Of a stretch of 64,000 nt of DNA, positions 9,500 to 58,848 are shown in pieces. This DNA comes from Thalia democratica (taxonomy: Eukaryota): assembly GCA_965202585.1 (NCBI GenBank), contig OZ241828.1, positions 76,012,001-76,076,000 on the forward strand. The letters are read 5' to 3'. The position numbers were made by a program, and so were the translations under genes. The notes beneath the pieces were generated by a model, which was not told the origin of the DNA, searched no databases, and worked only from the letters and a program-made list of their open reading frames with translations. How positions within the stretch are numbered: the stretch's first letter is position 1; each line of letters starts with the position of its first letter.

Positions 9500-9700
9500 G
9501 CATAATTCTCACCTTTTAGAATAAATTAGTTCTCTTATGTTAGATTTTTGCACACAAATTCTCACTTCCAACCGAACTGACGCGTATATATACGAACTTC
9601 GGCATAACCACCTTGATAAGAAAACAAGAGGCGTTTTGCGGCATCGATGATAACACGGCCTCCAAATAATGCCGAAACAAATTGATTTCTTATGAGTCCT
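9500..9700 (-). mobile_element. Possible C-terminal relic of a P-element/THAP9-like transposase (duplicate at ~55495-55690)
   Basis: One frame reads FLIKVVMPKFVYIRVSSVG..KI*HKRTNL.., and a shifted frame ILKGE, reminiscent of LIK.I..KY..IRL.H.GK...IRQKLTKLILFKGQ. Heavily decayed, recalled similarity only. Confidence 0.3.
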
Positions 9701-9819
9701 GAAGAACTTGTACAACAATGTATAATCAAATGACATTGCGACTTGGCGACTTGGCGCACTTGGCCATCTTGGCAGATAAAAACATCTTATTGCAACATTT
9801 ATTTATTTTTGTTTTTTGC

Positions 9820-10054
9820 AAACACTTATTCGCCTTTCTTTGTCCTGCGTTTCTAACATCTTCTGATTGCTTGCCATTATAAGTTATTTAATGTTTGGCA
9901 TACAATAATAGGAAACTTTTAGTGCCTTCCTGTTGAAAACTTTACAATATGGATGGTCTTCAGTTAACTTTTTACCAACAATCTCTAAACAGCGTTTCCC
10001 AACCAGCGTTGAAACGCTTTTGCACAATGAAGCATTGAAGTACAAAATATTTCT
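9820..10054 (-). mobile_element. Shorter duplicate of the same Penelope-like fragment
   Basis: RNILYFNASLCKSVSTLVGKRCLEIVGKKLTEDHPYCKVFNRKALKVSYYCMPNIK; near-identical to 55810-56047. Confidence 0.75.
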
Positions 10055-11579
10055 AGCTTCACATATGAAAATTGACGATCGAATCCTTTTATGTTCACTT
10101 CATCAGGAGTGTCGTGTCTTATTGTGGTGATTGCTGTTCGAAGTTAGTATAAAGTTGTCAAATAACAATAATTTGTTTCATAATGTTTGCTTTTAACTTT
10201 TGTTTTGACTTTATTTAATTCTTCTATATACAACTTTTGGACAACTTATTTTAATCTTTATTTTTACTGATGATAACTGTTTAAAGCTCAAAACAAGTAA
10301 TAAAAGTAAACATTTTAAAAACCTACGAAAAAATTTTAGAAATTATTAAGGTAACTTACCACACTTATCAACATCAATAAGCAAGACTAATAAAATTATC
10401 AAAATAGATATAAAACTTAAAATAAAAAAAAGTGTAAAGTTCTATATACGTTCACATACAACATTTAAAAAAATTGAGACAACTATAACACTTTTGACAA
10501 AATATACACTAATATGAAAATAAACATTAGAAAAGCTTAAAAACGACATAAAAATTATAATTCATTAAAAGGAAAGCTCGTTAATACTGTTTACTGTTTT
10601 GTAAATTTTTGAATCAACCAACCATTGTTTCAGGTGACGTTGCGAAACACAACATTTAAAAAAAATTGAGTCAACTATAACACTTTTGACAAAATATGCT
10701 CTAATATAAAAAATAAACATTAGAAAAAATTACTAACAACATAAATATTTATAACTCATTAAAAGTAAAGCTCGATAACACTGTTTATTATTTCGTTAAA
10801 TTTTTAAATCAACCAACTAGTGTTTCCGGTGACGTTGCAAAACACTGTGACGTAGTTGCGACCGGACGGGTTCAAAGTGTACATACCGGAAACGACATCC
10901 GGGTTGAAAACCCTCATCTCGTTACACGTCCTGTAAAACCTCCTCTCAACGTTTTCCGGCTTCAGCTTCGCGTTCTCAGCCTTCAGCTCGTCCAAGTCCC
11001 GTTGCATCTTGTTCATTTTGACCTCCGAAGCCTGAAAATCCTCTACAAACTGCTGGGAGATGTTCAACAGGACCCGGTTGTTCTCAATTATTTTCCTCTC
11101 CGCTTCTAACGGTACCCTTCCAACTTCTCCCTACAATTTCATCTAGTTTAACTTTGAGTTTTTAATAGTTTTTTATTTTATTTTATACTATAATTTATAT
11201 AGTTAGATGCTTTAACTATTATTTGATTGGATTTAACAGTTATTTTAATTAAAAAAATTTATTTACTATTTCGGTTTATAATGCTGTCTTTTATTTTCTT
11301 TTTAATTTTTAGTTTATAATGTATTTCTTTCATTTTATTTTACTTTCTTAATTTTTACTTATTTTTATGTTTAATTTCAATTATTTTCACCTTGCTCCCC
11401 TTAGGCCCGGCACTTCCAGCAGGTCCGTGCTTCCCGGGAAGTCCCGGAGGTCCTGCGGTGTTTTCCCTCTGTTGAAACTCCGATCCTTGCAAGTTTATGT
11501 TCAAGCTTGGACAATCGCTCTCCTGAGCGTTGAACAAACGGAACAGTGACGTAATAATCAAACACAAAATTAACTTCAT
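9985..11579 (-). pseudogene. Copy A, truncated: exons 11391-11579 and 10818-11130, then exon 3 (starts 10133) broken at ~10053 and joined out of frame to a Penelope-like fragment (stop at 9985)
   Basis: Exon 3 homology ends at ...TCATATGTGAAGCTAG, then reads EIFCTSMLHCAKAFQRWLGNAV*. Exons 4-5 are absent. The upstream acceptor-like AG conserved in the other copies is TG here. Confidence 0.8.
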
Positions 11580-14500: not shown

Positions 14501-16054
14501 AGAAAGTATACAGCAAGTTAAAATACAGAAGGTTCAAAATAAAGTATTTCAGTCAGTTAACACTTAAGTATATAAAGTAATAACTAATGCAAATTGAACG
14601 AAAAAAAAAAAGCATTTTAAAGAACTTTAGAATACTTAAGAATACTTAACTTAGAATTTACGTTTATAAAAGTCTTTGATTACTTTTTTCTTTAATACTT
14701 TTTAAAACTAAAGGTTAACAACTGGTATTACTTAAAAAATAAAAATTCTTTATAATTTAGTTTTATAAAGTAAATATCTTTTGTATCATTTTTGTTTTCC
14801 TTCTTACTTTAATTTTATAATTGCTCAGCTCTCGTCGATTCTAAACTTTGGTACAAGTTTTACAAAACCAAAACTGGATTTTTACAAAAATTCTTCGTGC
14901 TCTTTTCTAATAGTCAATCTGTTTACATATTTTGTTAGAAATAAGACCAAACAGATTGGATATGATTTTCAGTCTATAGTTTGAAGACTTTTGTTTTTTT
15001 CAAACTGGCATTAGATATAACTCATGGCTAGTTTTTTGGTCACTCTTTTAAAGATATAACTTATGGCTGGCTTTTTAGCTTCACACAGTGGCAAGCCATG
15101 ACTATCTTTTGTTTCAAATTACATTAATGAGCTAACCATGCAATCTGTTTTACCTGGAGAACCTCTGAATTTGAACACATAGAAAAAACAACCTTGAATT
15201 TGAAACTTCTTAAAAAAAAATTAAAAATTAAACTTTTTTTTTTAATTAAAAAATAAAACAGTAATTGAATTTTTACCTTCCACTATTTGATCTTAGTTGC
15301 TGATTTTTACTAATAAATAAATATTGTACCATACCAATTAGCTTTGTATAAATTTTATTTGAAGTTTTCAATAAACCTAAAGCTTTTAGTTTTATTTTCT
15401 AAACTATATATGAGTACCAAAATAAGTACTAGCAATAAAATAACAAATTCAGAATATTTAGATCAGGGTTGCCAAAAAACATGGAATTTGACAAGTTAGA
15501 CTAAAGAAACTGAAACAACCTGGAATCCTAAAAAGTTTATACATCCTAAGTAGTAAAATTTTATTTGACATAAATAATCTATCTTGTTGATGTTGTCATA
15601 TATATATTTTTTAAATACATTAATAGAAACTTTGATTTCCCTGAGAAGATTCTCTAAAAACATTTGGTTACCCAGTTAGATTAATGAAATGTTATATCAA
15701 TATCAGATATAAAATATACTGTTAGCCAATATTTAGCCACAGGACCATTTCAGGACTTTATATGGTTGAATTCTCATGGTGATTTGAATTAAAATGTTTG
15801 CATAATGTGATGATGTTAAAGCTGTGTATGGTACACAGTAAGACCTATTAGTTGCTGAACAGGCTAGTTTTAGATAATTCAAATTTTCAAAATTAGGTCA
15901 CTATGTATTAGGCTGTAGAGTTATAAGAAACTTTTATACAAGTTATCTTTATAAAAAGATATTAAAAGCAGCAGCTTTTTATTAATAAAATAAATAAGTC
16001 ATTCACAATTTAAATTACAGGGTTGCCACACACTGAGGGAACTCAGGAAATCTC
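11580..16054 (+). repeat. Upstream flank of copy A, duplicated at 58849-63542 (partial, more diverged versions upstream of B and C)
   Basis: Colinear sequence; ends inside a truncated hAT-like MITE at ~16054. Confidence 0.92.
16018..16054 (+). mobile_element. Left end only of the same MITE, truncated at a rearrangement breakpoint
   Basis: CAGGGTTGCCACACACTGAGGGAACTCAGGAAATCTC, then a switch to unit-B downstream DNA. Confidence 0.75.
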
Positions 16055-17660: not shown

Positions 17661-17842
17661 TTAAAAGCACTCAAGGGGTCCTAGTTCGTACCACCCATTC
17701 TCCCCACTTCCTCCAGTGTCGCCGAAGCGCAAGTAACCAACCGGTAATGAGCTCTTATGCTCCAAATAACCCTCGTCAGAAGTGATGACGTCATTTGAAT
17801 TCTGGTCGCAGTTACACTTCTGTTTCTTGTCCACACAAGTTC
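17661..17842 (-). CDS. Copy B exon 5, terminal (GTCVDKKQKCNCDQN...YELGPLECF*)
   Basis: Acceptor aaaacAG|GA; TAA at 17661-17663. Confidence 0.88.
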
Positions 17843-20309
17843 CTGTTTTTTGAAGTATCAGTTTCTAAATGTTCCTTAGAATTGTAAAGTACCTTTCCAA
17901 CATTCGTTTCAAATATAGTATATGTAATGAAGAAAGTTACTGAAGTTAAAAAACTTTAACAATAAAAACATATAGTACAAACAGCTGATACTCTCAGCAA
18001 TGTGTGATATCTTTTAAAAAATAATATTTTCTTTTATTTACGCTAATACATAATTTTACCAATTACTCCACCTTTTAAATGTATTTTTTATTTTTAACTT
18101 CATACCAAACTCACTGCTATAGTTTTTTTATTTAAAACGTAAATAACTTTTTATACCAATCAAGCATGTTGGTCCAACAAAACCAATACAAATTCCTACC
18201 GGTCATTCCACATGCACAGTGGTGTGATTTAGTAGCTCCGCCCCAATAATTCTGCCTGGTACCGTCCTGAGACGCCCAATAACCGTATTGATCGTCCGAT
18301 TTCAACAAGATGGAGCCCTTGCATCTATACTGTTTATTTTATTTCAATTCAATGAACAACTAGTATGAAAACTATTTGAAAACACTTTCTGAGAAAAGCT
18401 TCTAGTTGAAAAATTGTTTTAATGTTAATAAGTGTCTTGCAACTGGTCAACAGAATTCAGTTACTGCCCAGAAACTAAATTTAAATCATTACTTCAAACA
18501 GTTTTTACAAGCTTTAATTTTAAGGTATATATTAAAAACATAAACTAATTGTATGTTTACTAAAATAATAAAACAATTATTCCGCCTAGTCTGCATATAT
18601 TTTTATTTTATTTTTATAACTATTTGAAGTCTAAGAATAGCTGAATTAAAGCTACTAAGCAAAAATTTTATGGAATCTTTTTTTTTCCAACAGAAGTTGT
18701 TTTAAATTTTGTTATTCTAGAATTACAATTACTTTTATAAACTGCCTGCAGTACAAATGAGCATCTATGATCTCCCTGATGTAACTCGATGGTAATTCAT
18801 ACTCAACTAGCTTTCCATATGAAAGATGAGGATCGAATCCTTTTATGTTCACTTCATCAGGAGTGTCGTGTCTTATTGTGGTGATTGCTGTTCGAAGTTA
18901 ATATAAAGTTGTCAAATAACAATAATTTGTTTTATAATGTTAGCTTTTGACATTCGTTTTAACTTTATTTAATTCTTCTATATGCAACTTTTGGACAACT
19001 TATTCTAATCTTTATTTTTACTGATGATAACTGTTTCAAGCTCAAAACAAGTAATAAAAGTAAACATTTTAAAAACCTACAAAATTTTTTTAGAAATTAT
19101 TAAGGTAATTTACCACACTTATCAACATCAATAAGCAAGACTAAAAAAAGTTATCAAAATAATTATAAAATTTTAAATAAAAAAAAAGTGTAAAGTTTTA
19201 TATACGTTCACATACAACATTTAAAAAAATTGAGACAACTATAACAGTTTTGATAAAATATACTCTAATATAAAAGTTAAACATTAGAAAAGCGTATTAA
19301 CAACATAAAAGATATAATTCAATAAAAGAAATGCTCGTTAACACCGTTTACTGTTTTGTAAATTTTTGAGCATAACGTTCACATACAACATTTAAAGAAC
19401 GTTAAGACAACTATAAAACTTTTGACAAAATATACTCTAATATAAAAGTTAAACATTAGAAAAAATCACTGACAACATAAATAATTATAATTCATTAAAA
19501 GACGATAACACCGTTTACTGTTTTGTTAATTTTTGAATCAACCAACCAGTGTTTCCGGTGACGTTGCAAAACACTGTGACGTAATAGTGACCGGACGGGT
19601 TCAAAGTGTACATACCAGAAACGACATCCGGGTTGAACACCCTCATCTCGCTGCACGTCCTGTAAAACCTCCTCTCAACGTTTTCCCGCTTCAGCTTCGC
19701 GTTCTCAGCCTTCAGCTCGTCCAAGTCCCGTTGCATCTTGTTCATCTTGACCTCCGAAGCCCGAAAAACCTCTACAAACTGCCGGGAGATGTTCAGCAGG
19801 ACCCGGTTGTTCTCTATTATTTTCCTCTCCGCTTCCAACGGTACCCTTCCAACGTCTCCCTAAAATTTCATCTAGTTTAACTTTGAGTTTTTAATAGTTT
19901 TTTATTTTATTTTATACTATAATTTATATAGTTAGATGCTTTAACTATTATTTAATTGGATTTAACAGTTATTTTATTTAAAAAAAATTTATTTACTATT
20001 TCGGTTTATAATGCTGTCTTTTATTTTCTTTTTAATTTTTAGTTTATAATGTTTTTCTTTCATTTTATTTTACTTTCTTAATTTTTACTTATTTTTACGT
20101 TTAATTTCAATTATTTTCACCTTGCTCCCCTTAGGCCCGGCACTTCCAGCAGGTCCGTGCTTCCCGGGAAGTCCCGGAGGTCCTGCGGTGTTTTCCCTCT
20201 GTTGAAACTCCGATCCTTGCAAGTTTATGTTCAAGCTTGGACAATCGCTCTCCTGAGCGTTGAACAAATGGAACAGTGACGTAATAGTCAAACACAAAAT
20301 TAACTTCAT
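17661..20309 (-). CDS. Copy B, intact 322-aa secreted collagen/coiled-coil/Caspr-type fibrinogen-like protein (ficolin/collectin-like architecture); join(20121-20309, 19547-19859, 18733-18887, 18200-18329, 17661-17842)
   Basis: All four introns are GT-AG with compatible phases 0,1,0,1. Exons 189+313+155+130+182 = 969 nt, open to TAA. Translation: signal MKLILCLTITSLFHLFNA, (GXY)9 GPPGLPGKHGPAGSAGPKGSKGDVGRV, heptad neck, RTCSEMR..SGMYTLNPSG..VFCNVT, HDTPDEVNIKG..YCRQFIK YRCKGS..YWGGA..CACG..KCNCDQN..SDEGYL..LPVGYLRFGDTG..ELGPLECF, which matches the Caspr/neurexin-IV fibrinogen-like domain pattern from recall. Confidence 0.88.
18200..18329 (-). CDS. Copy B exon 4 (YRCKGSILLKSDDQYGYWASQDGTRQNYWGGATKSHHCACGMT)
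   Basis: Acceptor aaacAG|TAT, donor ACCG|GTAGGA. Confidence 0.88.
18733..18887 (-). CDS. Copy B exon 3 (AITTIRHDTPDEVNIKGFDPHLSYGKLVEYELPSSYIREIIDAHLYCRQFIK)
   Basis: Acceptor aacAG|CA, donor AAA|GTAATT; open frame missed by the ORF track. Confidence 0.88.
19547..19859 (-). CDS. Copy B exon 2 (end of collagen, coiled coil, start of fibrinogen-like domain)
   Basis: Acceptor ttttAG|GGAGAC continues the GXY register; donor ACTG|GTTGGT, phase 1. Confidence 0.9.
20121..20309 (-). CDS. Copy B exon 1 (signal peptide, Cys, first 7 GXY triplets)
   Basis: ATG at 20309; donor AAG|GTGAAA at 20120; 63 codons, phase 0. Confidence 0.9.
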
Positions 20310-20319
20310 TTTTGTTGTT

Positions 20320-20345
20320 TGATGAGGGTATTAGCTACAAAAAAA
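20320..20345 (-). promoter_or_regulatory. Splice-acceptor-like site 25 nt upstream of the copy B ATG (5'-UTR intron or trans-splice acceptor)
   Basis: TTTTTTGTAG|CTAATAC, preceded by ~125 nt without AG; conserved in B, C (32857), D (56797) and E (58874). Confidence 0.45.
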
Positions 20346-22534
20346 TTAAAAATTTATTATAAGTTATTTAATAAATAGGTATTTAATGTTAAAGAGTTAT
20401 TATTCGAAGAAAAGAAAATCAACAAACATTGAACAAATATTTAAAATTATTAAAAATGGTAGCTTTAGGTGGTAAACACCACAAGATTTTTTAAAACGTT
20501 TTTTTTTTAATATAACACATCTAACTTTTTCTATTTAAGCAACATAAAAAAGAACAAAATACCGTACAAAAAGTTGAAAAATTATGTTCAGGTTAATCTT
20601 AATATTTTTTGGTACAATATTATTTCCAAAATAAAGTATGATTTTTATAAAAATATACAACTAGATTAATCTATAAAACTAGTATTGAATGTTTAACTAG
20701 CTTTGCTTAAATCTTTCTCAACAAATTAAAAAATATTGTTTTCTCAGTCTTGCTTATGTTTTTTTTATAACATTATAAAGCTTAACTTTTAAACAGAAGT
20801 TTGCTCACAACGTGTTCAGAAAACAGCTAAGCTTATTAACAATTTTTAAACTAGTTGTTTCAATCACAAAAAGTGTGTAAACTGAAAATATCATGTATAA
20901 GTATAATAAGTTTGTTAACTAATGTTTTATCCTAAAAAAAATTATCTGTCACATAAAAAATAAGGTTTCTAAGTTTAAAAACAACGTTTTTCAACTACAA
21001 ACATTTGTTTACATTTACAGCTTTTATATATTTTGCGATATTTGTATTCTGACCATGATAGTTCTGATCTACAATAATACTTAACTTTATCTTTTGTTTT
21101 AAACGGTCGATAAAAACAGAATAACATAAAGTTATTCATTTATAAAAGCACTAACACTCGACTAATGTTTGCTCAACCAAGTCTATAACGGCAATGTTTT
21201 ACTAAATCAGTGTTTCTTTTGGTTAATGTATAACTAAGTTGTGTAAAAATAAAACTTGTGGTTTGATAAAGTGAAGTTGATAAATGTTGTTTAAGCTGTT
21301 TAAACTTTTATTTGTTGAAAGTTTTACAGTAACATCAAGTTTGAATAAATAAAACAGTTCTATTTTGTGTTGTTGTCCGTCATTTCTTTATAAATTTTAA
21401 TTAATCTTAGTTTTCTGGCTTTCTACAAAACATGAAAAATAATTAAGTAAAGTTTTATGTATGTTCTTAAAACCCTAAAATAAGCGAAGTAACAATAATA
21501 TTACAAAGTTTTTTGTTTTAAAATTTCTGTACAGTCTATTAAACTTGATATACATTGAAAATATTCTAAAATTTTTACAGGTTTTACCAAACTTTGATCG
21601 GAAAAAATAATTAATAACAAAAATGAATATTACAAACCCACCTTTCTCTTACTAAGATTAGTTTAGTAGTTAATACAGCTGTCGGAAAAATACGGCCCTC
21701 AGACCAAATAAAGCCCAGGGCCTGTTTATTAGCTCTTGATATTAAATTAAGTAGAATTAACTTCATCTTTTGTTTTAAATAAAGTTTTCAACTATTTGTT
21801 TTTGATTGTGAGTAAACTATGCTGTTTATTCCATGTATACTTCTTTATCAAGTAAAATTTTTCCTAAATATTGTTGCCTGCGAAGCGGTTTTCAGGGCAT
21901 GTTAATTTAACTTTTGTTAAAACAAAAATGTTTATTGTTTGACTGTAAATAAACTGCAGGTTAAAATTTAAACGACATACAAATTAAGCAAAACTCTATT
22001 GAAACAGATAACAGATAAATGCATTTTTTGAAAATATTCATGCATTGATAAAAAGTAAGAATTTCAATGCATCAATATGTATTTTAAACTACTTTGCAAA
22101 ACATGACACTACAAAATAAAAACCAATGCATCTTCAAACAATACTTAAGCTTACGTTATTAAAAAGCTAAAACTATTTTATACTGACCTAGTGAGTCAAA
22201 CTTATTTTATGAATTTTAAATTTTAACTACATTTTATTTTAGTATTTGTCTTATATTAAATTCCAGACAGAAGAAAATATTTAAATAACATAATATTAAT
22301 TTATCTATATACTATAATAATATAGTTTATTGTTTTCTTACTATAACTTTTATAATTGTTTTTTTTTTCTTTCTATAAATATTTGACATTAAGTAAAAGT
22401 TTTAAATAAAAATAAAATTTTTGTAAATTCTTTTAAGAGGTTCTCCGAAATTGATAAGTAAAAAGATAAGGCTTATAAATTATGAGAATATATAAATTCA
22501 TCATTATTAAGCAACCAACAATATTTACATTATT

Positions 22535-22958
22535 CAGGGTTGCCACTCTTTAAGTCAAAAAAGTGAGTGACCAAAAACTTCCCTGACTGACCTTAAACTA
22601 ATCTTACCTAATAATAGTAGACTAAATCTAATTTAAATTCTTAGTAAAAAATTAAATAAAATTTTACAATAAATAAAATTAAGTTATGTAACAACATTGG
22701 TAATAAAATAACTAAATTTCAGTATTAAAGTACTGAAACTAAATCAAGTAAGTTTTATTTAAAACCTATAAAAATCTAGCCTTGGACTTTAAAAAGTTTT
22801 AACATTACCCTGAAATATTTATTAAAAATTTAAACTACCCATAATCACCCTAAGTTATAAAATAAAGTTTCCCTGAATCTCCCTGAGTCTCTCAGAGGCT
22901 TACTAAAGTTAAAAATACCCTGTGTTTCCCTGAGTATCCTGAGTGTGTGGCAACCCTT
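22535..22958 (-). mobile_element. Older, diverged copy of the CAGGGTTGCCAC MITE in opposite orientation
   Basis: CAGGGTTGCCACTCTTTAAG at 22535 and GTGTGTGGCAACCCT at ~22944-22957; internal TTCCCTGA motifs; ~424 bp. Confidence 0.7.
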
Positions 22959-24634
22959 GATTTTTGGAATTAATAAAATTTAAAAAACAAACTATTTAAA
23001 GGTATATGGTTTTCCTAAGCTAGACCCCCACACTTAAAAACAGTATAACATTAGCCATATAGTTTATTAAAAGCTTTTTTCTTCAAATATAAATAACAAT
23101 TAAAGATATCCAAATTACGCTAGAGAGAATGAAATAACTGCAGTTACTTTAAGATTTTGTTTTCATAAAAATCTTTCACTCAAAAAAAATAGAACGTCAA
23201 GTACAATTAAATATTTTACTTTTTAAACTTAATTAAGATTTTATTGCTTACATTTTTTTTCTTTAGAACATTGTTTTGAAAATAAAATGTTAGAAGTTGT
23301 AACACGTATGTCATATATTAAAATTGTCAGTTAAATAAATAATAAAATATGAACCTAAAAACATATAGCTAAAAGTTTACAAGCTTCTGTTTTTAAGTTT
23401 CATATTCAAGTTGTTTTTTTTGGTTGTATTTTTAGTTGAACTTTATTAAAAATATCAACAAAAACAATCAGACTTAGAACAGCTAATGCTTTTTACTTTA
23501 ACTAACAGGCTCTTCAAAAAAGACTCAAAAAAATTATTAAAAAAAAGTTATTAGGAAAAAATTAAAATATATAAATCATGTTAATCCTTGTCACAATTCA
23601 TTTATGACACAATTTAATAAATAATAAATAATGTCTAAATAACATCTAAATGGAGATTAAAAACTTATTGACCCAACAAAAAATACTTTGAATAAATGCA
23701 TGGTCTTTGTAAATTAGACCTCCTTACTAAAAACTCCACAAACATTTTCATAAAATAAATGTGATAAGTTTTCAAGATAACATGAAAAGAGATATTTAGA
23801 AAAAAACCTGGTAAGGCCTGAGCTATGCAGATAAGATTTCATTTACCTTGTGTGGTCTGAGGAAAACCTTACTATAACTATTTTAAATAAATCACCTACA
23901 AGTATTTTTATTTTTTTATTCTTATAGGAAAAAAGCCAAAATGTTAATTGAACCAAAATATGTTAACATGAAGATATAAAAAAACTAAACATATGATGAA
24001 TAAGTACGAGCAGTTATCTAATTAGCTAAGATGAAACGCCTGACTGTTTATTTAGTTTTATTTTAGTGTCTAACAAAAATAACTTATTATAGTTTGTATA
24101 CTGTGTGCAAAACTCTATAACTAAGTTAAGAAAACTTATATAAGTGCGAAAAAGGAAACAAAATTATTGTAGAAATCACAATCTTGCTTCTATTGTTTTG
24201 AAAATGAATAAATAACACGCTTTCATTTCACTAGTACTTTTGTTTATTAAAACATTATCAAGCGGTAAACGGCTGAAATTATAAACACACAATTAATAGT
24301 AACTAATTTATAAAGTAAACAAAACTAAAATAAAAGTTAAAAATTAAACTTTTAGACTATATAAATTTGTATAATATTTCATAATAAAAAAACAATTAAT
24401 TATCATACAAAATTTTACAACTAAGATCTTACCAACTAACAACTCACAAATGCATACAAGCAAACAAGCCAAAACAGAATGTACAAAAGTGCTCTTTTCC
24501 TGAAAATCTCTAAAATATAAAACTTTCATAAACAGTTTTATTTAAGTTAATTTTTGCATTTAAACTTTTTATTCATAAACTTTCGTTGTAGTCTAAATAC
24601 TTTAATTCAGGTTGTTCTAAAAACATTTTCATAT

Positions 24635-25385
24635 AGGCACTGTTTAATCTATGAGCCACGTACGGCCCGGATCCGGCCCGCAGAGTGAAAATGACCTGCC
24701 TCCGACCGTTTTTTTGAATTTAATGGGACTCGGCTCGCAAATGAAAATGACCGGCCGGCCCGCGAGCAAATTTAAAGGCCCGCAAAGGGTCAATATAACA
24801 AAAATTTTTACAAAACTTTGTATCATATTTTTATAAAACAAAACTGTAAGAATTTGACTTCAACAACATGCTAAAAAATACTTTATAAGTTATTGTGTAC
24901 TAATAAATACACCATTTTTTCCTAATATTTTGTCTTGTTATAACTTAGTTGGAATATCTTTTTGTAAAATTACCCCAAGCAAAGTGTTTGTTTTTAAGTT
25001 CTTTATTTTAAATATGTATCTTTGTCAATTTTAATGTCAATTCTATTTATAGACATTATTTAAACATCTGACATGTCTTAATATACATCTTAAGTTGTCA
25101 AAATTGAGAAAGTTTTTTGAAATTGAAAGATTTTTAAAAATGATCATCTTTATCCATAAATTTATATTCCGGCCGGATCCGAAACTTTTATTTACATTAG
25201 AATCCGACTGGATCTGTATCTCGATTTAAAATTAGTTTCCAGTTAGATTCGGATCTAAAAAGTAATCATTCGGCTTGATCCGGATACCGGATCCGGTAGA
25301 TCACTAATTCGGAATGCTTCGAGCCGCAAAAGACTAATTTTTTTCGGATCCAGCTCGTCGATTGAAAAACGTTGCTCAACCCTAG
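24635..25385. mobile_element. Composite of non-autonomous hAT-like DNA transposon relics
   Basis: Left end with CGGCCCGGATCCGGCCCGC repeats and right end AAAAACGTTGCTCAACCCTAG. A nested GGATCCGG-rich end (..CCGGATCCGGTAGATCACTA) lies at ~25140-25306. Family assignment is from recalled motif style. Confidence 0.45.
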
Positions 25386-25649
25386 TTTAATCCTATATTT
25401 TTAATATCATTATGATGATTCTCAAAGTAGTATTTAAATAATGCAAATTTTTCTCCTTTATCAACCAAGTTAATATTTGGAATATTTTCTTGTTGTTTTT
25501 ATGTGCATTCCATCTTACGTTAAAAATGTTTAGTCTGACCTTTTTGAGTGTGAAAAAGCATTTTCCACACAATTGTGAAACCATTAGTTAGTTTTATATT
25601 TCATTTAACTTTTAAAAAACAGTCGAGTAAAATCAAAAAATTGTAAAGT

Positions 25650-25740
25650 GGTTTACCGGATCAAAAGTTTCGGATTTAACCGAATCCGAATTCAAATCTT
25701 ATTTTGAAGTTTAGGATTCGGTCGCACTTAAGACCGAATC
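25650..25740. mobile_element. CCGAATCC-rich transposon end relic
   Basis: Repeated CCGAATCC/GGATTCGG motifs ending GGATTCGGTCGCACTTA. Confidence 0.35.
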
Positions 25741-25903
25741 TTGGGTTAAGCAGAGCATTATACAAACTTAATTATTATAACTAACGTTATTTTATTTACT
25801 TTTTAAAGTTTGTTTTTTTGTTGTTCGTTACTATTCACTAAACTAAAAACTTGATCTACTTTTTTATTCAAAAAACACATCACTTCACACACATGAGGAG
25901 TCT

Positions 25904-26181
25904 TTAGGTCCTAAACAAAATTCTGATGATTTGATTGAACGTATTGTAGTCTTCATGCACTCCCGTAACATAAACTGTAGAGTTGCTTGCAATTGCTTTA
26001 CAACTATACTTCGGTACAGTTGGACTAGGAAGATACTTTTTAGTTTCAAAGTTGATCAACAGAAAATGTTATTATTTGAGACATTTCCCATATGATTATC
26101 ATTAAACACAACAACACTAAATTCTTCCTGATCACAATGTCTATTTTGATACAAAACAGAAACACGATTACTCAAATGTCT
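25904..26181 (-). pseudogene. Kelch-like (BTB-BACK-kelch family) gene fragment
   Basis: RHCDQEEFSVVVFNDNHMGNVSNNNIFC* then, in a shifted frame, NFETKKYLPSPTVPKYSCKAIASNSTVYVTG, which resembles a kelch repeat (LPSM..PRY.CK....S.IYV.GG). Stop and frameshift present. Confidence 0.5.
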
Positions 26182-28666
26182 GCTGATTGTTTTGAAACTA
26201 GATACAATTTTTTAAATATACTATTGACTCGAGTTTTATAGTTTATAAAACTTATGCATATAGTATATGTAAGGTTTAGTTTTCATTGACTTTGATAGTC
26301 TTCAAAGAACAACTTGGGAAGTTAATTAAAAAAAAATCTATTTTCTCAACTCTTATCACATTAGTTGTTCGAATAAGTATTTTATTATTAGCTTCAGTAA
26401 AATAAAGTTAGAAAATTAATTACTATTTTAAATTCACAGTTTTATTTCTTTATAATTGAAAACTTAAATAATCTAGATTTACTTTATATCTTACCAAGCA
26501 AATAGCTCTAAATCAAATTATATGTTACCAAAGAACTATTTGATAAAAAAAACTTAACAGATGTGTTTATAAAGTTTTTTCAAATTAGGTAACCATCAAT
26601 TTTTGTTTTTAAATTATATAGTATAGTTTAAATTTATGATAAATATATTACAAACAGCCTATTCTGTAAAACTTCAAATAGTGTTAGCTGTGAATATTTT
26701 ATAACCTATGAAACCACAAGAAAACGTTCGAAATAATCGATCATTTTATTTTAGACATAATTATAACCTAATAAAAATAAACTATTATATTTTTTAGTAA
26801 AAAAGACAAAAAAGTAAAAAAAAAACCTTTAAAAATAATTAAATGTTAAAATTTTTGATGTTAAAATGGTCTATGAATAGCAAAACTAATTTAAGCAAAG
26901 TGAATAGCAAAACTAATAAAAGTAAAACAGTTGTCTTTGTTTTTGTTACTACTCTTTTATTAATTATTAAATATAACATTAATAAAAGTAATACTTTTAT
27001 GGTGTTATATTTAATAATTAATAAAAGAGTAACAACAAAAACAAGGACAACTGTTTTACTTTTCTTTGAAACAGTTCTTAAAAAAAATCTAATTCGACAA
27101 AAAAAAATAAATATAAATATTATTAAGTAATCAATTGTGTTAAATAAGTTAAGGAATTCTGTTTTACTTTATTTCTGTTTTCTTAATCAAATAAAATAAG
27201 TTTTTAATTTCTTTTTTGATTCAATTTCTTTTTAGTAAAAAATAATATTTAAGTTATTATTATTTGGTATGATTTGCGTTGTTTAATTGACAACTAATCT
27301 TTAAATTACATAAAAATCTTATTTAAATGTTTTTTTTAATTAAGTTTTTGAATGTCAATACAGTTTTTGTAAGTATTTTTCAAGGTAAGTCATAATCTTT
27401 CAAACTCTGATGAGCTAATATTTTTGTTAAAAAAACAAAAATCCTTGAGAATAAAGTTTTGGCCTTGCTTGTCTTTATTTTTAATATTATTTCAAAGTTT
27501 GATTACATTTTTCTTGTAGTTTGTAAAAAAAAATGCTTCTTGTTTAAAACTTAATAGTTATAAAAAATAATATAAAAAGTATCTAAAGGAAAATAGTTTA
27601 GTGTGAAATATTAAAAAATATAATCACTAAATTATAAAACAGCACAACCAAGGTATTTTAAGATATTAATTTTTCGTAATTACTTATTTTAATGGTTTTA
27701 AAAATTTTTATTTTGAAAATAATGGTATTTTACTGAGTAAGTAAGCTAATATTGTTATTAAATACATATTTTGATGTTTATTATGCATTAATATAGATCA
27801 TAGTAACTTATCTTAATATATTTGTTAAATTTTCTAGATATCTAGTTGTAATTTGTAATATTTCCTTGAGAATGTTCAGAAAGTGTTTTGTTAATATATT
27901 TACACAATTTTTAATGAAACAAACAAATCTAAGTAAGTTCTTACTTAAACTTTTACTACATTTGTCAAAAAACTTTCATTTGAGATAGTTTAATTACTAC
28001 TATTTGAACTTTAAAACTAAAAAAGCCAATAAAGCTACCAGATTTATTTTCTAGTAAAAGGTTTTTGAAACAAAAAAACAAGTATGAATTTTTTAATAAA
28101 AGCTGATTATCAAGATCAAAAAAATGTATAAAAGCTTTAGTTTTATTAAAATTTATATTTTCATGTGATCCACAACATATGCATTACGCACAGCACATTA
28201 AACTGTTGTAACACACATAATTTACCGAAGAGCTTTAAAATTTATGAATCTTTAATCTTAAAATTTTTATAACTATTTAGGTTTAAAACAAAACAGGTAT
28301 AAATGGAATGTCAATTAACTTTTGATGGATTTATATTCCATTTTGGTTATTTTATATTGTTACAGATAGGGTATCTTTGTTAATTGTTAGTAATAAAGCA
28401 AGTCAATATAGTAATACATACTAGAAATATCGTCAAACAGGTACATAAATTGCAATTGAAATAAAAGCCAGGCTGTAACATCTAGTAGAGTCTAAAGCCT
28501 TACCACGTTAGTAGCTGTATTTCAATTTGTAAAGTTCTTAATTTTTAAAATTATTGAATTTAGTTAAAAAGATTATCAAATTTTGCATCAATATATGTGA
28601 ATATAATACAAAAAAAATTACGTTTTACTGCTAACTACTATATTTCAAGACAAAAATTGTTAATAG

Positions 28667-28725
28667 TACAGTGTTAATTCACTTATCTGGCTTTCACTTA
28701 TCCGAACGCTCACTTATCTAAACAG
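28667..28725 (+). mobile_element. Tc1/mariner(pogo)-like terminal relic at the edge of unit C
   Basis: TA|CAGTG start followed by three CACTTATC motifs. Confidence 0.4.
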
Positions 28726-30342
28726 TTTCAGTCAAGAAGAAAATTCAAAAAACTTCCATTATTAAACATAAACATTTTTGTGTGATTAACAAATATTTAA
28801 CCTTTCACGCTGAAATTAAGTTTACATAAATTGATTTTATAAAATATGCAATTTAGTTCATTATTATGACTTATTATTTTCACTAAAGCTCAAACTTTGT
28901 TCAAAACTAGTTTAATTATCGATAACCTTTTATACAAAGTTACTTAATTTTTAATTGTTTTTATTAACAATGCCATTTGAAATATGACTTAAAACTTAAG
29001 TATTTAATATAACTTAAGTATTTTTGAAAGTTAATTCAATTTAAGGTTTTTTAAAGAAATAATTTTACTTTTTTATCTAATCTAGTTTTTAATTCAAGCT
29101 TTATTGTAATAGCTGTTATTTCAAAAACTTTTTGTTTAGATGAGGTGCATGACATTTTTTTATTTGCAAGTTATATAAGTTTGACACACTTAACATACCA
29201 GGTTTTTAAAATGATCAAGACATCAAAAAAACGAGTTGCACTAACTATTAAAATAAACTAGAAAATTTGTAAAACGTTAAAAACAATGTGCCAAAGTCTT
29301 TTATAATGGAGCAGTTTAGCATAGAGAGGTCGACTTTGTACAAAGTTTGAAAAAAAAGAAAATTTAAAAAACTTTAACAAAGAAATTGATGAGCTGAGCT
29401 TTCATTATTTATTATGCATTCATAATATACAGAGATTAAAACTTTTTAAGACAAAAACGATTTTTTTTTTACTTATTCCGAAAAATGCTTATCCAGACAT
29501 GTTTACAAAAAATCTTGCCCAATATGTCCGGATAAATGAATAAGCACTGACTTAAGATTTACAATATTTCTATTTTTACTCAGCAGTAAATATTAGCTAA
29601 AATTAACCGTTTTTAATGAATTTTGAACTGCTTTCAGGGTGAAAACAAGCTTTTAAAGATTAGCGGTTTTTTAAAGTTATAAGAATTTAAATAACCACGA
29701 TCAGTTATTTTGTATACGGGTCTTAATTTACAGCAATTAACTTTTTGTAGAACCGCTAATCTGTTCTGTAAAACCACTTTAAGTTTCGTTAAAGTTAAAA
29801 AATGTATATACTAAACAAAATTAAGCGTTTTTAATAGCTAAAAGTTTTTTAATTTAATTAAGGTTGTTTATTCCGTAAAAATTTTCTTTTTAATCCTTTT
29901 TGCTTTTTCACGCAATTGCTTACCAACCTACTTATAAAATAATGAGCTATATTGTTTTTAAAAGAAGATAACTTATAAATAGATATTTAACTCGTTAGTT
30001 AAACTTACAACACCAAACTGACTTGTATTTTATGTCTTTTAAATTATTTAAAAATCTAACTTAGCTTTTACATAAAGCTCTATAAAATAATATTTCAAAA
30101 AACTATTCAAGTTAATTTAATTCAGTAAGTTTGTAATATATTACTTAAAAAACAGCTATTTAAGTAAATATATTTATTTTTTTCTACAACATAGCGTTTT
30201 AGAACAACAAATATATTAACAAAAACAGTAAAAGTACTTAAAACTAATGACTAAAAAAGCAATAACTGCTAAAATAAAAGTCTAAATTGTTATTTGTGAA
30301 TAACAATAAAAAAAGTCTATTATTTAAATTAAACACGTAAAA

Positions 30343-30524
30343 TTAAAAGCACTCAAGGGGTCCTAGTTCGTACCACCCATTCTCCCCACTTCCTCCAGTG
30401 TCACCGAAACGCAAGTAACCAACCGGTAATGAGCTCTTATGCTCCAAATAACCCTCGTCAGAAGTGATGACGTCATTTGAATTCTGGTCGCAGTTACACT
30501 TCTGTTTCTTGTCCACACAAGTAC
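30343..30524 (-). CDS. Copy C exon 5, terminal
   Basis: aaaacAG|GT ACT TGT...TGC TTT TAA. Confidence 0.87.
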
Positions 30525-32832
30525 CTGTTTTTTGAAGTCTCAATTGCTAAATGTTCCTTAGAATTGTAAAGTACCTTTCCAACATTCGTTTCAAATATAG
30601 TATATGTAATGAAGAAAGTTACTGAAGTTAAAACACTTCAACCTAAGTAAAACATAAAGTACAAACAACTGATACTCTCTGCAATGTATGATATTGTTTT
30701 AAGATTAATATTTTCTTCCAATTACACTTTTATTTATTTTCAACCATTAATTAACATTTTATCTAAAATTCTTTTTTTAAACTTCATACCAAACTCACTG
30801 CTATAGTTTTTTTATTTAAAATGTAAATAATTTTGTATATTGATCAAGCATATTTGTCAAATAAAACCAATACAAATTCCTACCAGTCATTCCACATGCA
30901 CAGTGGTGTGATTTAGTAGCTCCTCCCCAGTAATTCCGCCTGGTACCGTCCTGAGAGGCCCAATAACCGTACTGATCGTCCGATTTCAACAAGATGGAGC
31001 CCTTGCATCGGTACTGTTAGTTTAATTTTAACCCAGTTAGCAACGAGTATGGAAACTAGTTGAAAACACTTTCTGAGAAAAGCTTCTAGTTGAAATATTG
31101 TTTTAATGTTAATAAGTGTCTTGCAATTGGTCAACAGAATTCAGTTACTGCCCAGAAACTAAATTTAAATCATTACTTCAAACACTTTTTACAAACTTTA
31201 ATTTTAAGGTATATATTAAAAACATAAACTAATTGTATGTTTACTAAAATAATAAAACAATTATTCCGCCTAGTCTGCATATATTTTTATTTTATTTTTA
31301 TAACTATTTGAAGTCTAAGAATAGCTAAATTAAAGCTACTAAGCAAAAATTTTATGGAATCTTTTTTTTCCAACAGAAGTTGTTTTAAATTTTGTTATTC
31401 TAGAAATACAATTACTTTTATAAACTGCCTGCAGTACAAATGAGCATCTATGATCTCTCTGATATAACTCGATGGTAATTCATACTCAACTAGCTTTCCA
31501 TATGAAAGATGAGGATCGAATCCTTTTATGTTCACTTCATCAGGAGTGTCGTGTCTTATTGTGGTGATTGCTGTTCGAAGTTAGTATAAAAGTTGCTAGA
31601 TAACAATAATTTGTTTTATAGTGTTTGCTTTTGACATTCGTTTTAACTTTATTTAATTCTTCTATATACAACTTTTGGACAACTTATTTTAATCTTTATT
31701 TTTACTGATGATAACTGTTTCAAGCTCAAAACAAGTAATAAAAGTAAACATTTTAAAAACCTACGAAAATTTTTAGATATTATTAAGGTAATTTACCACA
31801 CTTATCAACATCAATAAGCAAGACTAAAAAAAATTATTAAAATAATTATAAAACTTAAAATAAAAAAAAGTGTAAAGTTTTATATACGTTCACATACAAC
31901 ATTTAAAAAAATTGAGACAACTATAACAGTTTTGATAAAATATACTCTAATATAAAAGTTAAACATTAGAAAAGCGTATTAACAACATAAAAAATTAAAA
32001 TTCATTAAAAGTAAAGCTCGATAACACTGTTTACTGTTTCGTTAATTTTTGAATCAACCAACCAGTGTTTCCGGTGACGTTGCAGAACACTGTGACGTAA
32101 TAGTGACCGGACGGGTTCAAAGTGTACATACCAGAAACGACATCCGGGTTGAAAGCCCTCATCTCGCCGCACGTCCTGTAAAACCTCCTCTCAACGTTTT
32201 CCCGCTTCAGCTTCGCGTTCTGAACCTTCAGCTCGTCCAAGTCCCGTTGCATCTCGTTCATCTTGACCTCCGAAGCCCGAAAAACCTCTATAAACTGCCG
32301 GGAGATGTTCAGCAGGACCCGGTTGTTCTCAATTATTTTCCTCTCCGCTTCCAACGGTACCCTTCCAACTTCTCCCTTTATTTTTATTATTTTTTATTTT
32401 TGTTTTTTTTTTTGTTTATCTAATATTTGAGCTCGTCAGATACTTTGCTCATCATTTTATTCATAACATTATTCATTTTATTCATTGTATACTTTTAAGT
32501 CATTCACCTGTTTTTTTTATTTCATACTGTTGTTTATATTATACGATTTTTATCTTTAAACGTTTTAATTTTTTAATTGTATGTTTTATCAATTACTTTA
32601 ACTAAATTTGCTTATTTTTATGTTTAACTTTAATTATTTTCACCTTGCTTCCTTTAGGCCCAGCACTTCCAGCGGGTCCGTGTTTCCCAGGAAGTCCCGG
32701 AGGTCCTGCGGTGTTTTCCCCTCGCTGAAACTCCGATCCTTGCAAGTTTATGTTTAAGCTGGGACAGTCGCTTTCTTGAGCGCATATGGAGCACAATAGT
32801 GACGTAAAAATAAAACAAAAAAATAACTTCAT
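30343..32832 (-). CDS. Copy C, intact 322-aa paralog; join(32644-32832, 32063-32375, 31416-31570, 30884-31013, 30343-30524)
   Basis: Same exon sizes and phases as copy B. Exons 3-5 differ from B by 12 synonymous and 1 non-synonymous change (hand count). The intron-1 acceptor is an A-rich aaataaAG. Confidence 0.86.
30884..31013 (-). CDS. Copy C exon 4
   Basis: ctaacAG|TAC CGA TGC...ATG ACT G|GTAGGA. Confidence 0.87.
31416..31570 (-). CDS. Copy C exon 3
   Basis: Protein identical to B exon 3; AG/GT boundaries. Confidence 0.87.
32063..32375 (-). CDS. Copy C exon 2
   Basis: GEVGRVPLEAERK...NVTGNT; donor G|GTTGGT. Confidence 0.87.
32644..32832 (-). CDS. Copy C exon 1
   Basis: MKLFFCFIFTSLLCSICA signal; donor AAG|GTGAAA. 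Confidence 0.88.
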
Positions 32833-43174: not shown

Positions 43175-43550
43175 CCAGTTTAAAACCCAAAAGTTTCAAA
43201 CTTTCTAAGTCTAATTTTAACTTAAAAATATCAAGCTGACAGTGTGGCCACTGTTTTTTGAAAAATATTTTTCTGAATTTCAAATTTTCTTCTGGATTTT
43301 AATGGTTTTCATGTCATAACAAAATTGCATTCAAAAATCTATTATAAAATATATTTTTAGCTTTTAAATGTGGACCTAAATTGTTTTGTTATGTTAGAAC
43401 CCCTATGGTCATAAAAAAATATTCAGTACCCTTTGGTTTTATAATAATTTAAATTGTTTTAAATTTAAAGTTAGTTTCTGAGTTGTAAGTAAGAAAGTTA
43501 AATAGCTTATTTTTGAGGGACCACAAAAATTCAAAACTATATGTTATTAC

Positions 43551-56189: not shown

Positions 56190-56771
56190 GTTGCATCTCG
56201 TTCATCTTGACCTCCGAAGCCCGAAAAACCTCTACAAACTGCTGGGAGATGTTCAACAGGACCCGGTTGTTCTCAATTATTTTCCTCTCCGCTTTCAACG
56301 GTACTCTTCCAACGTCTCCCTAAAATTTCATCTAGTTTAACTTTGAGTTTTTAATAGTTTTTTATATTATTTTATACTATAATTTATATAGTTAGATACT
56401 TTAACTATTACTTAGTTGGATTTAACATTTTTTTTTGTTTAAAACAAATTTTATTTACTATTTTAGTTTACAATGCTGTCTTTTATTTTCTTTTTAATTT
56501 TTAGTTTATAATGTTTTTCTTTCATTTTATTTTACTTTCTTAATTTTTACTTATTTTTATGTTTAATTTCAATTAATTTCACCTTGCTCCCCTTAGGCCC
56601 GGCACTTCCAGCGGGTCCGTGCTTCCCGGGAAGTCCCGGAGGTCCTGCGGTGTTTTCCCTCTGTTGAAACTCCGATCCTTGCAAGTTTATGTTCAAGCTT
56701 GGACAATCGCTCTCCTGAGCGTTGAACAAACGGAACAGTGACGTAATAATCAAACACAAAATTAACTTCAT
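56065..56771 (-). pseudogene. Copy D, truncated/chimeric: exon 56583-56771 plus exon 2 from 56319, fused at 56189/56190 in frame to Penelope-like RT sequence (147-aa ORF)
   Basis: Reads ...SEVKMNEMQ|HENNTLQEISSSQSIFKVLTQHFKEAIRASGYDHELTYKHI*. Only ~50 bp of its own upstream region remains. Confidence 0.78.
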
Positions 56772-56836
56772 TTTTGTTGTTTGATGAGGGTATTAGCTAC
56801 AAAAAAATTAAAAATTTATTTCACAATTTCAAATAC

Positions 56837-58848
56837 TTTTATGAACTGCCTGCAGTGCAGATGAGCATCTACAATCTCTCTGATGTAGCTCGATGGTAAT
56901 TCGTACTCTACAAGCTTTACATATGAAAAATGAGGGTCGAATCCTTTTATGTTCACTTCATCAGGAGTATACATCAGGAGTATACATCAGGAGTACATAT
57001 AAAATAAAAAGAAAAGTTTAAAATTCACTCATTTGTTTTTTGTGTGCATCAAAAACTTTTTTATTCTTAAAAATACTTGCATTTAAACTTAAATGCGGAA
57101 CAACTATTAAAACATTTTAAAAATCTTTATGAGTTTATAGTACACAAATAACCTAACCCTTTAAAATATTAATTAATACACTATCATTTTATATATATGC
57201 GTTACAGTGTTATCCTAGATAATACAAGCGCATAATATTTTCAATTCTGTTCAAACCTGTATCAAACTAAATAGGCTGTAAGTTTTACGCTTCGATTTTA
57301 TAATAATTTCTTGCTGAAACATTACCTAATAGCCAAGTTTGCAACTCATAACCTTGTACACATATTTATGAACACAGTTAAATATATAATAGCCAGTTTT
57401 ATGGTTAAAACTTAAGCTAGTACTTGAAATATAAGTTTTAAGCAACTACGTAGCTTGGTCAAACCCAAGCTTTCATAATCAGCCGAAACAAATCTACGAA
57501 ATTAATTTCGCAAAGCTTGCATACTACCAGTAATTGTTTATTTACGATTTTTATAAAAATAAGTAATAAATATGTGTGAATATCAGAAATTTTTTTATTT
57601 ACACATAATTGTAAGTTATCAAATAACAACAATGTTTGCTTTTGACACTCGCTTTAATTTTTTTGTCTTTTATAAACAACTTTTATATTACTTTTCTTAA
57701 TTTTTATTTCTACCGGTGGTAAAATTTTGTTTCAAGCTCTGAAGCAAAACAGTTCAGTAAATATTTATCACCTGTAAAAAAATATTAAAAATTTTTTAGG
57801 TAATTTACCACACTTATCAATATCAATAAGCAAGACTAATAAATAATACCAAACTTATAAAACTTAAAATTAATGAAGAGTGAAGTTCTATATTTTACAC
57901 AAATTTCTGAGCATAACGTTCACATACAACATTTAAAGAACGTTAAGACAACTATAACACTTTTGACAAAATATACTCTAATATAAAAGTTAAACATTAG
58001 AAAAAATCACTAGAAACATAAAAAATTATAATTCATTAAAAGGAAAGCTCGTTAAAACTGTTTACTGTTTTGTAAATTTTTAAATCAACCAACCGGTGTT
58101 TCCGGTGACGTTGCAAAACACTGTGACGTAATAGTGACCGGACGGGTTCAAAGTGTACATACCGGAAACTACATCCGGGTTAAAAATCCTCATCTCGCCG
58201 CACGTCCTGTAAAACCTCCTCTCAACGTTTTCCCGCTTCAGCTTCGCGTTCTCGGCCTTCAGCTCGTCCAAGTCCCGTTGCATCTCGTTCATCTTGACCT
58301 CCGAAGCCCGAAAAACCTCTACAAACTGCTGGGAGATGTTCAACAGGACCCGGTTGTTCTCTATTATTTTCCTCTCCGCTTCCAACGGTACTCTTCCAAC
58401 CTCTCCCTTTATTTTTATTGTTATTTTTTTGTTTATTTAATATTTGAGCTCGTCAGATATTTTGCTCATCATTTGTTTATAACATTATTTATTTTATTCA
58501 TTGTTTACTTTTATCATCATTCACTTGTTTTCTTATTTCATATTGTTGTTTACATTATAAGATTTTTATTTTGAAAGGTTTTAATTTTTTAATTGTATGT
58601 TTTATAAATTACTTTAACTAAATTTACTTATTTTTATGTTTAATTTCGATAATTTTCACCTTGCTCCCCTTAGGCCCGGCACTTCCAGCAGGTCCGTGCT
58701 TCCCGGGAAGTCCCGGAGGTCCTGCGGTGTTTTCCCTCCGTTGAAACTCCGATCCTTGCAAGTTTATATTCAAGCTTGGACAATCGCTCTCCTGAGCGTT
58801 GAACAAACGGAACAGTGACGTAATAATCAAACACAAAATTAACTTCAT
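56837..58848 (-). pseudogene. Copy E, disrupted: intact exons 58660-58848 and 58094-58406, a 5'-truncated exon 3 (56837-56968), exons 4-5 missing
   Basis: The exon-3 acceptor and first ~23 nt are replaced by a ~620-bp copy of upstream intergenic DNA. The exon-3 donor is followed after ~16 bp by the upstream flank of copy D. Confidence 0.8.

Follow-up and report, generated by a model that had tools for sequence, protein, structure and literature searches.

A Tandem Family of Secreted Tunicate Proteins with a Short Collagen Stalk, a Predicted Coiled-Coil Neck and a Caspr/Procollagen-Type Head

Introduction

The question raised by this locus is what a small tandem family of genes encodes, in what kind of animal, and to what end. 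We analyzed 64,000 nucleotides (nt) of the Thalia democratica assembly GCA_965202585.1 (contig OZ241828.1, forward-strand positions 76,012,001 to 76,076,000), referred to below as the window; in the genome numbering used here for contigs labeled C, the window is C4:76,012,001-76,076,000. An original prediction, made from the letters of the window, described five tandem copies of a gene for a secreted protein of 322 amino acids (aa), and viewed the product as a convergent analogue of ficolins and collectins in a non-bilaterian animal, with a stalk motif that resembles the MASP-binding site.

We report here the gene structure, the selection acting on the intact copies, the architecture of the protein, the fold class of its head and the conservation of its stalk motif, all of which were observed. 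The host is a tunicate. With somewhat less than even confidence, we read the product as a tunicate-specific recognition or adaptor oligomer that resembles the defense collagens.

Gene Structure, Splicing and Selection

Two of the five copies in the window (copies 2 and 3; Table 1) are whole genes, and the other three are 5' fragments; all of the members are on the minus strand. The predicted five-exon gene and its 322-aa product were recovered: in copy 2, the exons join into a 969-nt coding sequence that is open throughout, with GT-AG at each intron. The protein of copy 3 is identical to that of copy 2 at 302 of 322 residues (94%). The view of the locus as a five-copy tandem family holds in part. 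The stalk motif is present five times and the intact and dead copies are arranged in tandem; however, three of the copies are fragments that lie outside the interval 17661-32832 to which the family had been assigned, and that interval contains only the two whole genes.

The splicing model is supported by an environmental transcript. A HMMER search with exon 2 yielded a 324-aa protein (P0001), 92-93% identical to the window proteins, which is encoded by a 1,076-nt transcript (L001) from the JGI environmental sample 3300019144. The transcript is colinear with the five exons, sequence close to the untranslated regions included, and joins them exactly at all four predicted junctions. It should be noted that this is evidence of a spliced mRNA from a relative or a paralogue, with a product ~93% identical, and not RNA of this assembly; searches for sequencing runs of this organism gave none that is recorded as RNA.

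The tandem cluster continues past the window, with intact 322-aa genes at C4:75.997 Mb, at C4:76.099 Mb and on contig C48, and with another broken copy at C4:76.12 Mb. For the five intact 322-aa genes of the genome, pairwise ratios of nonsynonymous to synonymous divergence (dN/dS) are 0.17-0.29 (0.18 for copy 3 versus copy 2); therefore, the intact copies are under purifying selection. For example, in the collagen segment of these five genes, dN is 0-0.017 versus a dS of 0.05-0.41. The presence of intact and dead copies, both in the window and beyond it, appears to fit birth-and-death evolution, and the tandem expansion that had been proposed for the family is borne out.

At least 8 divergent paralogous loci were detected on other chromosomes as well; tblastn in this genome placed divergent paralogues on C5, C7 and C2, which correspond to subfamilies of environmental transcripts. 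One of these paralogues, L029 (C5:27.02 Mb), retains a signal peptide, the Cys of the N-terminus and the head, while its collagen segment is missing along with most of its neck; the environmental protein P0011 is similar.

Host and Relatives

The proposed placement of the host outside Bilateria did not survive. A Hydra/cnidarian host, which the AT-rich sequence could suggest, was rejected on the basis of COX1. The mitochondrial COX1 gene (L002, C1833:6815-11131) contains 35 AGA/AGG (AGR) codons. The ascidian code (AGR = Gly, ATA = Met, TGA = Trp) yields the COX1 motifs GGFGN, FFGHPEVY, LPGMG and IPTGIK, whereas a cnidarian or standard-like code puts Arg at the AGR positions of those motifs; the Gly residues are thus correct only by the ascidian code. 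Two nuclear copies of mitochondrial DNA are located on the window's own chromosome (L003 at C4:56.84 Mb and L004 at C4:56.94 Mb); they are ~80% identical to the mitochondrial contig over 3-4 kb and contain many stops. The closest COX1 proteins are marine-catalogue entries at 92% and 88%. The only named relatives of the family are from the ascidian Clavelina. Since the host is a tunicate, the family does not represent a convergent lectin pathway outside Bilateria, and a convergent lectin-pathway-like molecule of a non-bilaterian (cnidarian-type) animal is an extremely improbable explanation, although the architecture and the Lys motif that it invoked are real. Tunicates have been reported to possess MBL-like lectins, ficolins and MASPs (PMC5465252).

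Searches of a collection of 5.8 billion proteins, with P0001 and with the family profile, returned only 12 proteins of comparable length. Seven are environmental (P0001, P0009-P0013 and P0016), and five are from Clavelina lepadiformis (P0014, P0015 and P0017-P0019), where they are encoded on four chromosome-scale contigs and show 32-36% identity. The Clavelina proteins have the same order of signal peptide, Cys, short collagen, helix and head, and carry the automatic NCBI name "contactin-associated protein-like". The collagen-stalked form has so far been seen only in tunicates, as judged from these sequences.

Protein Layout and Predicted Trimer

Both intact proteins have the layout that was originally described, with a signal peptide, an N-terminal Cys, nine Gly-X-Y (GXY) triplets, a heptad neck and a Cys-rich head. 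Residues 1-18 are a hydrophobic, signal-like start (by inspection), and the N-terminal part of the mature protein contains a single Cys, C23. The GXY run occupies residues 43-69, with nine uninterrupted triplets; the collagen-bearing members of the family have 6-10. Residues 71-126 are predicted to form one long helix (a neck of ~55 residues), followed by a head of ~195 residues, the 10 Cys of which do not vary within the family.

In the Pfam analysis, the folding, the fold searches and the trimer modeling, P0001 (~93% identical) served as a proxy for the window protein. The AlphaFold monomer model of P0001 has an overall predicted local distance difference test (pLDDT) value of 66.9; in the head, blocks of 80-94 alternate with blocks of 51-69. 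The trimer modeling that had been suggested as a check gave a homotrimer that passed its controls: the three-copy prediction for residues 43-324 of P0001 scored 0.34, compared to 0.01 for the best control, with at least 72% of the contacts in agreement between runs and a partner pLDDT of at least 79. Of 30 proteins solved as pairs of one chain, 21 reach the mark applied to this score, compared to none of 23 solved as single chains; this calibration was made with two copies and on mainly microbial proteins. The confident contacts follow the a/d (3-4) heptad spacing in residues 74-127 and also cover residues 43-67. Trimerization is thus predicted, in the form of a parallel three-stranded coiled coil that would continue into the collagen segment; in the model, the heads make no confident contact with each other.

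Fold of the Head

The assignment of the head to the fibrinogen-like (FBG-like) module of the Caspr/neurexin-IV type was confirmed by structure comparison. In a Foldseek search of AFDB-SwissProt, the top 20 matches were all CNTNAP1-5 (residues ~581-791, E values of 1e-14 to 1e-11, 21-27% identity; 25-27% for modules matched at 1e-14), followed in the ranking of reviewed models by neurexin-IV, axotactin and fibrillar collagens. Among solved structures, the C-propeptides of procollagens I and III lead (Foldseek E ~1e-9, template-modeling score by target ~0.5). The VIA Z values are 12.5-12.7 over 165-173 residues for procollagen C-propeptides versus 6-7 over ~105-120 residues for ficolin, fibrinogen, angiopoietin-like and intelectin domains. 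Language-model and shape searches led to COLFI, GON and Caspr-like clusters, and the ESM Atlas agrees. For the head, a fold common to the FBG-like module of Caspr/CNTNAP and the C-propeptide of fibrillar procollagens is well supported.

Sequence profiles yielded weaker matches. Pfam COLFI matched at 25.1 bits versus a cut-off of 26.2, over profile positions 5-121 of 233 only, and 6 of 11 members gave a match below the threshold; a weak Collagen match was the other Pfam result for the proxy. Among PDB sequences, the matches to the family profile (E ~1e-5) came from the C-propeptide of collagen I and from the fibrinogen gamma chain, in a region that spans the helical segment and the first ~60 residues of the head only. 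Fibrinogen_C matched in any way only one of 11 members (E 0.0073) and did not match P0001, Lectin_C matched none of the 11, and no C1q family or structure was present among the sequence or fold matches. The description of the protein as a ficolin analogue with a fibrinogen-like head was consequently too strong, given the failure of Fibrinogen_C and Z values of 6-7 for ficolins versus 12.7 for procollagen.

The module is widespread. In clusters of the AlphaFold DB and the ESM Atlas, proteins of 285-505 aa from other phyla combine the neck and the head. Cnidarians, molluscs and arthropods have fusions of the head with Ig, TSP1 and C1q domains, and fusions with LamG also occur outside tunicates. 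No Collagen Pfam family was found in any listed cluster of the head module.

These matches bear on three explanations that differ from the one we favor. According to the first, the product is a structural matrix protein, the trimers of which build or cross-link an extracellular material (for example, tunic, feeding mucus net or basement layer), with the head as a COLFI-like assembly knob and with Cys and Lys used for cross-linking or docking. The procollagen C-propeptide is indeed the best solved match and COLFI the only Pfam match of the head, the module is fused to Ig, TSP1, C1q and LamG in many matrix-type proteins of other phyla, and tandem amplification is common among abundant secreted structural proteins. 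Furthermore, transcripts of every subfamily are present in environmental metatranscriptomes, suggesting high expression, as for secreted matrix proteins. However, a load-bearing collagen would have to be longer than nine GXY triplets; the X-position Lys is not a usual substrate for hydroxylation and cross-linking, yet it is the sole invariant residue other than Gly; and numerous divergent subfamilies with a retained stalk motif are more reminiscent of the evolution of recognition molecules. A matrix role is less likely than not, but a serious rival. If it is correct, the family would amount to a minimal "procollagen", with a triple helix of 27 residues that is driven by a coiled coil and a COLFI-like knob.

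The second explanation is that of a mini-procollagen, the head of which is a propeptide-like module that would direct folding and then be cut off by a protease of the tolloid/BMP-1 type, recruited through the Lys in the manner of PCPE and other CUB proteins, leaving a short disulfide-linked collagen peptide or a free head. The order of collagen, helical stalk and COLFI-like domain is that of the C-terminal end of fibrillar procollagens, and the best structural matches include 6FZV/6FZW, in which the CUB protein PCPE-1 is bound to a C-propeptide trimer. This order is offset by the head itself, which is the most conserved part of the protein (43 invariant columns across the family) and is retained in the collagen-less L029 and P0011. 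In addition, inspection revealed no recognizable procollagen C-proteinase site after the GXY run, and the COLFI match is below the cut-off and covers only half of the profile. Such processing is quite improbable.

A signaling ligand of the angiopoietin-like, C1q/TNF or Cthrc1 kind, which would cluster a cell-surface receptor through its heads, is the third explanation, and we give it equally little credence. It draws on the weak sequence matches that liken the coiled coil and globular head to the fibrinogen gamma chain and angiopoietin-like proteins, and on the existence of short-collagen signaling proteins (Cthrc1, PMC7058181). Developmental ligands, however, would be unusual in having a fast tandem birth-and-death turnover and so many divergent paralogues, and the head is not C1q-like.

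Lysine Motif of the Stalk

The motif GLPGKHGP is invariant in the five window copies, as had been claimed: the corresponding DNA pattern occurs five times in the window, always on the minus strand, compared to 0 expected. Because exon 1 of these copies is 86-99% identical at the DNA level, this invariance alone is weak evidence. Firmer evidence comes from the line-up of 10 divergent collagen-bearing members, in all of which the motif is kept. In this line-up, the residue before Gly is Pro in 10/10 stalks and the next X is Lys in 10/10; the X of the triplet after the Lys triplet is Pro in seven and Ala in three, the residue that follows Lys is His, Arg or Ile, and the remaining X and Y positions of the stalk all vary. 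The form P-G-K-[H/R/I]-G-[P/A] is thus present in every collagen-bearing paralogue and in Clavelina, and always in triplet 1-3 of the stalk. Conservation across lineages that are only ~30-35% identical points to constraint.

Two caveats had been attached to the motif, namely that it could arise by chance and that His stands in place of an aliphatic residue. Given the residue composition of the family itself, a single stalk would carry the motif by chance with a probability of ~6-7%. The second caveat is lifted for Clavelina, where the sequence is PGKIGP with aliphatic Ile, and it stands for most members, which have His or Arg. In the MASP-binding consensus of collagen stalks, Lys drives specificity, and three substitutions are enough to give SP-A MASP binding (PMC2856262). 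The family's P-G-K-x-G-P matches this published consensus by sequence, and its retention is the best argument for the original prediction, firmer than the evidence on which that prediction drew.

Search for a Protease Partner

The genome was searched for CUB, Trypsin and Sushi domains, and the best 150 of 382, 689 and 2312 candidates, respectively, were scored. A MASP of the CUB-EGF-CUB-CCP-CCP-protease type, for which the original prediction had suggested a search, was not found among these candidates, 17 long open reading frames (ORFs) being examined with Pfam and four multi-exon CUB loci with tblastn; given the fraction scored, its absence is not shown. The architectures seen were CUB-LDLa-Trypsin (two genes), CBM14-CTLD-Trypsin, Trypsin-Sushi, Trypsin-TSP1-EGF and CUB only.

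The two CUB-LDLa-Trypsin genes are intronless ORFs of 801 aa (L005, C1:50.20 Mb) and 680 aa (L006, C7:24.65 Mb). CUB and LDLa modules both bind Lys via Ca2+/acidic pockets, so these two proteins are alternative candidates for the partner of the stalk Lys.

Several observations concern the proteases of this genome in general. Many serine-protease genes are single long open frames. A 693-aa ORF (L013, C7:10289000-10295000, ORF 2226-4304, minus strand) joins a peritrophin-A chitin-binding domain to a pair of C-type lectin domains and to a trypsin domain, and thus places recognition and protease on one chain. Sushi/CCP modules are numerous (2312 first-look candidates), with dense arrays at C1:55.55-55.58 Mb, C1:58.02-58.12 Mb and C5:29.66-29.91 Mb.

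Proposed Mechanism

The recognition or adaptor oligomer that we tentatively prefer would be assembled as a trimer from its C-terminal side, and its short triple helix would be nucleated by the neck and head, as is the case for collectins and procollagens. Cys23 could then join trimers into higher oligomers, as in adiponectin, and the three heads would form a multivalent binding end for a putative ligand. The strictly conserved X-position Lys of P-G-K-x-G-P/A may be the site at which a partner docks by means of a Ca2+/acidic pocket that binds Lys. The leading candidate for this partner is a MASP-like CUB protease, and the alternatives are other CUB- or LDLa-bearing proteases.

Several points weigh against this proposal. 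No gene with the MASP architecture was seen in what was an incomplete search. A ficolin-type ligand pocket cannot be claimed for the predicted head. The nearest solved fold is a trimerization module and not a known lectin. The structure and trimer predictions were derived from the proxy P0001 and not from the spliced product of the window itself, the quality of the monomer model is moderate, and the success of the trimer prediction may in part reflect remembered coiled-coil and collagen geometry. Finally, in the sequences compared, the Lys triplet is the first to third of the stalk, as opposed to the MBL site, which follows the kink, and the residue after Lys is His or Arg in most members and not aliphatic.

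A more specific proposal would make the family a further tunicate class of lectin-pathway-type initiator, in which a MASP-like or other CUB/LDLa protease is docked via P-G-K-x-G-P and targets are sensed by the Caspr/procollagen-type head in place of a C-type lectin, fibrinogen-related or C1q domain. We consider this unlikely; if true, it would provide the first defined binding function for the orphan Caspr FBG-like module. The defense collagens (collectins, ficolins and C1q) are the textbook case of one stalk with varied recognition heads, and tunicates are at the base of the lineage in which the lectin pathway was elaborated. In tunicates, a multi-gene family that has kept the protease-recruiting Lys of the stalk would add a fourth kind of head to such a stalk, and would be a candidate for an unrecognized arm of chordate innate immunity. 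The family would also offer a soluble, easily expressed form of the Caspr-type module, which is part of vertebrate neuronal adhesion proteins.

Other Features of the Window

The window is AT-rich (GC content of 0.21-0.31). The coordinates of the family members are listed in Table 1. Exon 3 of copy 1 is interrupted at ~10054 by unrelated sequence, and this breakpoint is the edge of a duplicated block.

Table 1. Family members in the window and their main parts (window positions)
Feature	Position	Strand	Description
Copy 1, truncated	10054..11579	minus	Exon 1 (11579-11391) and exon 2 (11130-10818) open; without exons 4-5
Copy 2, intact gene	17661..20309	minus	5 exons, 969-nt spliced coding sequence, 322 aa, no internal stop, GT-AG at all introns
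Copy 2, exons	20309-20121, 19859-19547, 18887-18733, 18329-18200, 17842-17661	minus	
Copy 2, exon 1	20121..20309	minus	Signal peptide (aa 1-18), N-terminal segment with the sole Cys23, GXY triplets 1-7
Copy 2, P-G-K-H-G-P codons of exon 1	20152-20174	minus	
Copy 2, exon 2	19547..19859	minus	Final two GXY triplets, heptad neck (aa ~71-126), start of head
Copy 2, exons 3-5	17661..18887	minus	Remainder of the Cys-rich Caspr-type/COLFI-like head (aa ~167-322)
Copy 3, intact gene	30343..32832	minus	5 exons, 322 aa
Copy 3, exons	32832-32644, 32375-32063, 31570-31416, 31013-30884, 30524-30343	minus	
Copy 4, truncated	56190..56771	minus	Exon 1 (56771-56583); exon 2 cut at 56190, after ~130 nt; without exons 4-5
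Copy 5, truncated	56837..58848	minus	Exon 1 (58848-58660), exon 2 (~58409-58095), 3' part of exon 3 (56968-56837); without exons 4-5

A block of ~16 kb, 1-16054, recurs at 47017-63542 with ~98% identity. Truncated family copies are located inside both blocks, and the second one contains extra partial duplications. This pair of blocks may stem from a recent segmental duplication; the other possibility is an artifact of the assembly or of haplotypes. Tandem repeats with units of ~2.35 kb and 93-94% identity are found at 1862-6553 and 48876-53596, and another tandem array, at 41480-47763, has a period of ~1.2-1.45 kb and 83-94% identity.

The sequence at 7952-10054 (and at 53673-56047) adjoins the breakpoints of truncated copies 1 and 4 and is mostly local to the cluster. 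Within it, ~390 bp (about 9409-9800) recur at many sites of the genome with ~80% identity (1361 first-look candidates); the matches include tandem arrays with a ~1.2-kb period at about 50.0-50.2 Mb of C7. The ORFs of this breakpoint sequence had no Pfam match, and no Rfam family reached its gathering score anywhere in the 64-kb window, the breakpoint sequence included.

Comparison with Known Systems

By sequence, the layout of the family appears analogous to that of collectins and ficolins, with a head that belongs neither to the C-type lectins nor to the fibrinogen domains of the ficolin type. We found no described family with this architecture in the literature searched. Like ficolins, the members are secreted, with a Cys23 segment at the N-terminus followed by a short collagen-like stalk and with a head from the wider fibrinogen/COLFI fold group; nine triplets are of about the same order as the shortest ficolin stalks. 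They differ from ficolins in a head that fails Fibrinogen_C and has a Z of 6-7 over about 110-120 residues to solved ficolin heads, in a long coiled-coil neck that ficolins are without, and in the location of the Lys triplet at the N-terminal end of the stalk. The collectins (MBL and SP-D) share the order of Cys, collagen, coiled-coil neck and head with the family, including a neck that is predicted to trimerize, and the Lys motif is shared with MBL; the MBL Lys site comes after the kink. In contrast to collectins, the head of the family is not a C-type lectin domain (CTLD), and the stalk is much shorter.

Cthrc1, the known short-collagen family, is present in ascidians (PMC7058181). It is small and secreted, and has a trimeric C-terminal head after about 12 GXY triplets. 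It differs from the family in its C1q-like head and in having no coiled-coil neck. Membership of the family in Cthrc1 was rejected, as there was no C1q-like match and a neck of 55 residues lies between collagen and head.

The procollagen C-propeptide (PDB 4AE2, 5K31 and 6FZV) is the best solved structural match, and procollagen shares with the family the order of collagen, helical stalk and globular domain, as well as the trimerizing role. The difference is one of 9 GXY triplets versus about 340, with no long uninterrupted triple helix in the family, and of 10 conserved Cys in the head; COLFI has 8. The neck-plus-head proteins of other phyla can be aligned over both the neck and the head, and differ in that the listed clusters are without the Collagen family.

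The closest match overall is the FBG-like module of Caspr/CNTNAP/neurexin-IV, which aligns with the whole head, and we know of no established function for this module. Caspr is a transmembrane protein of ~1,300 aa with discoidin, laminin-G and EGF domains, whereas in the tunicate family the module stands alone on a collagen and coiled-coil stalk, in a protein of 322 aa.

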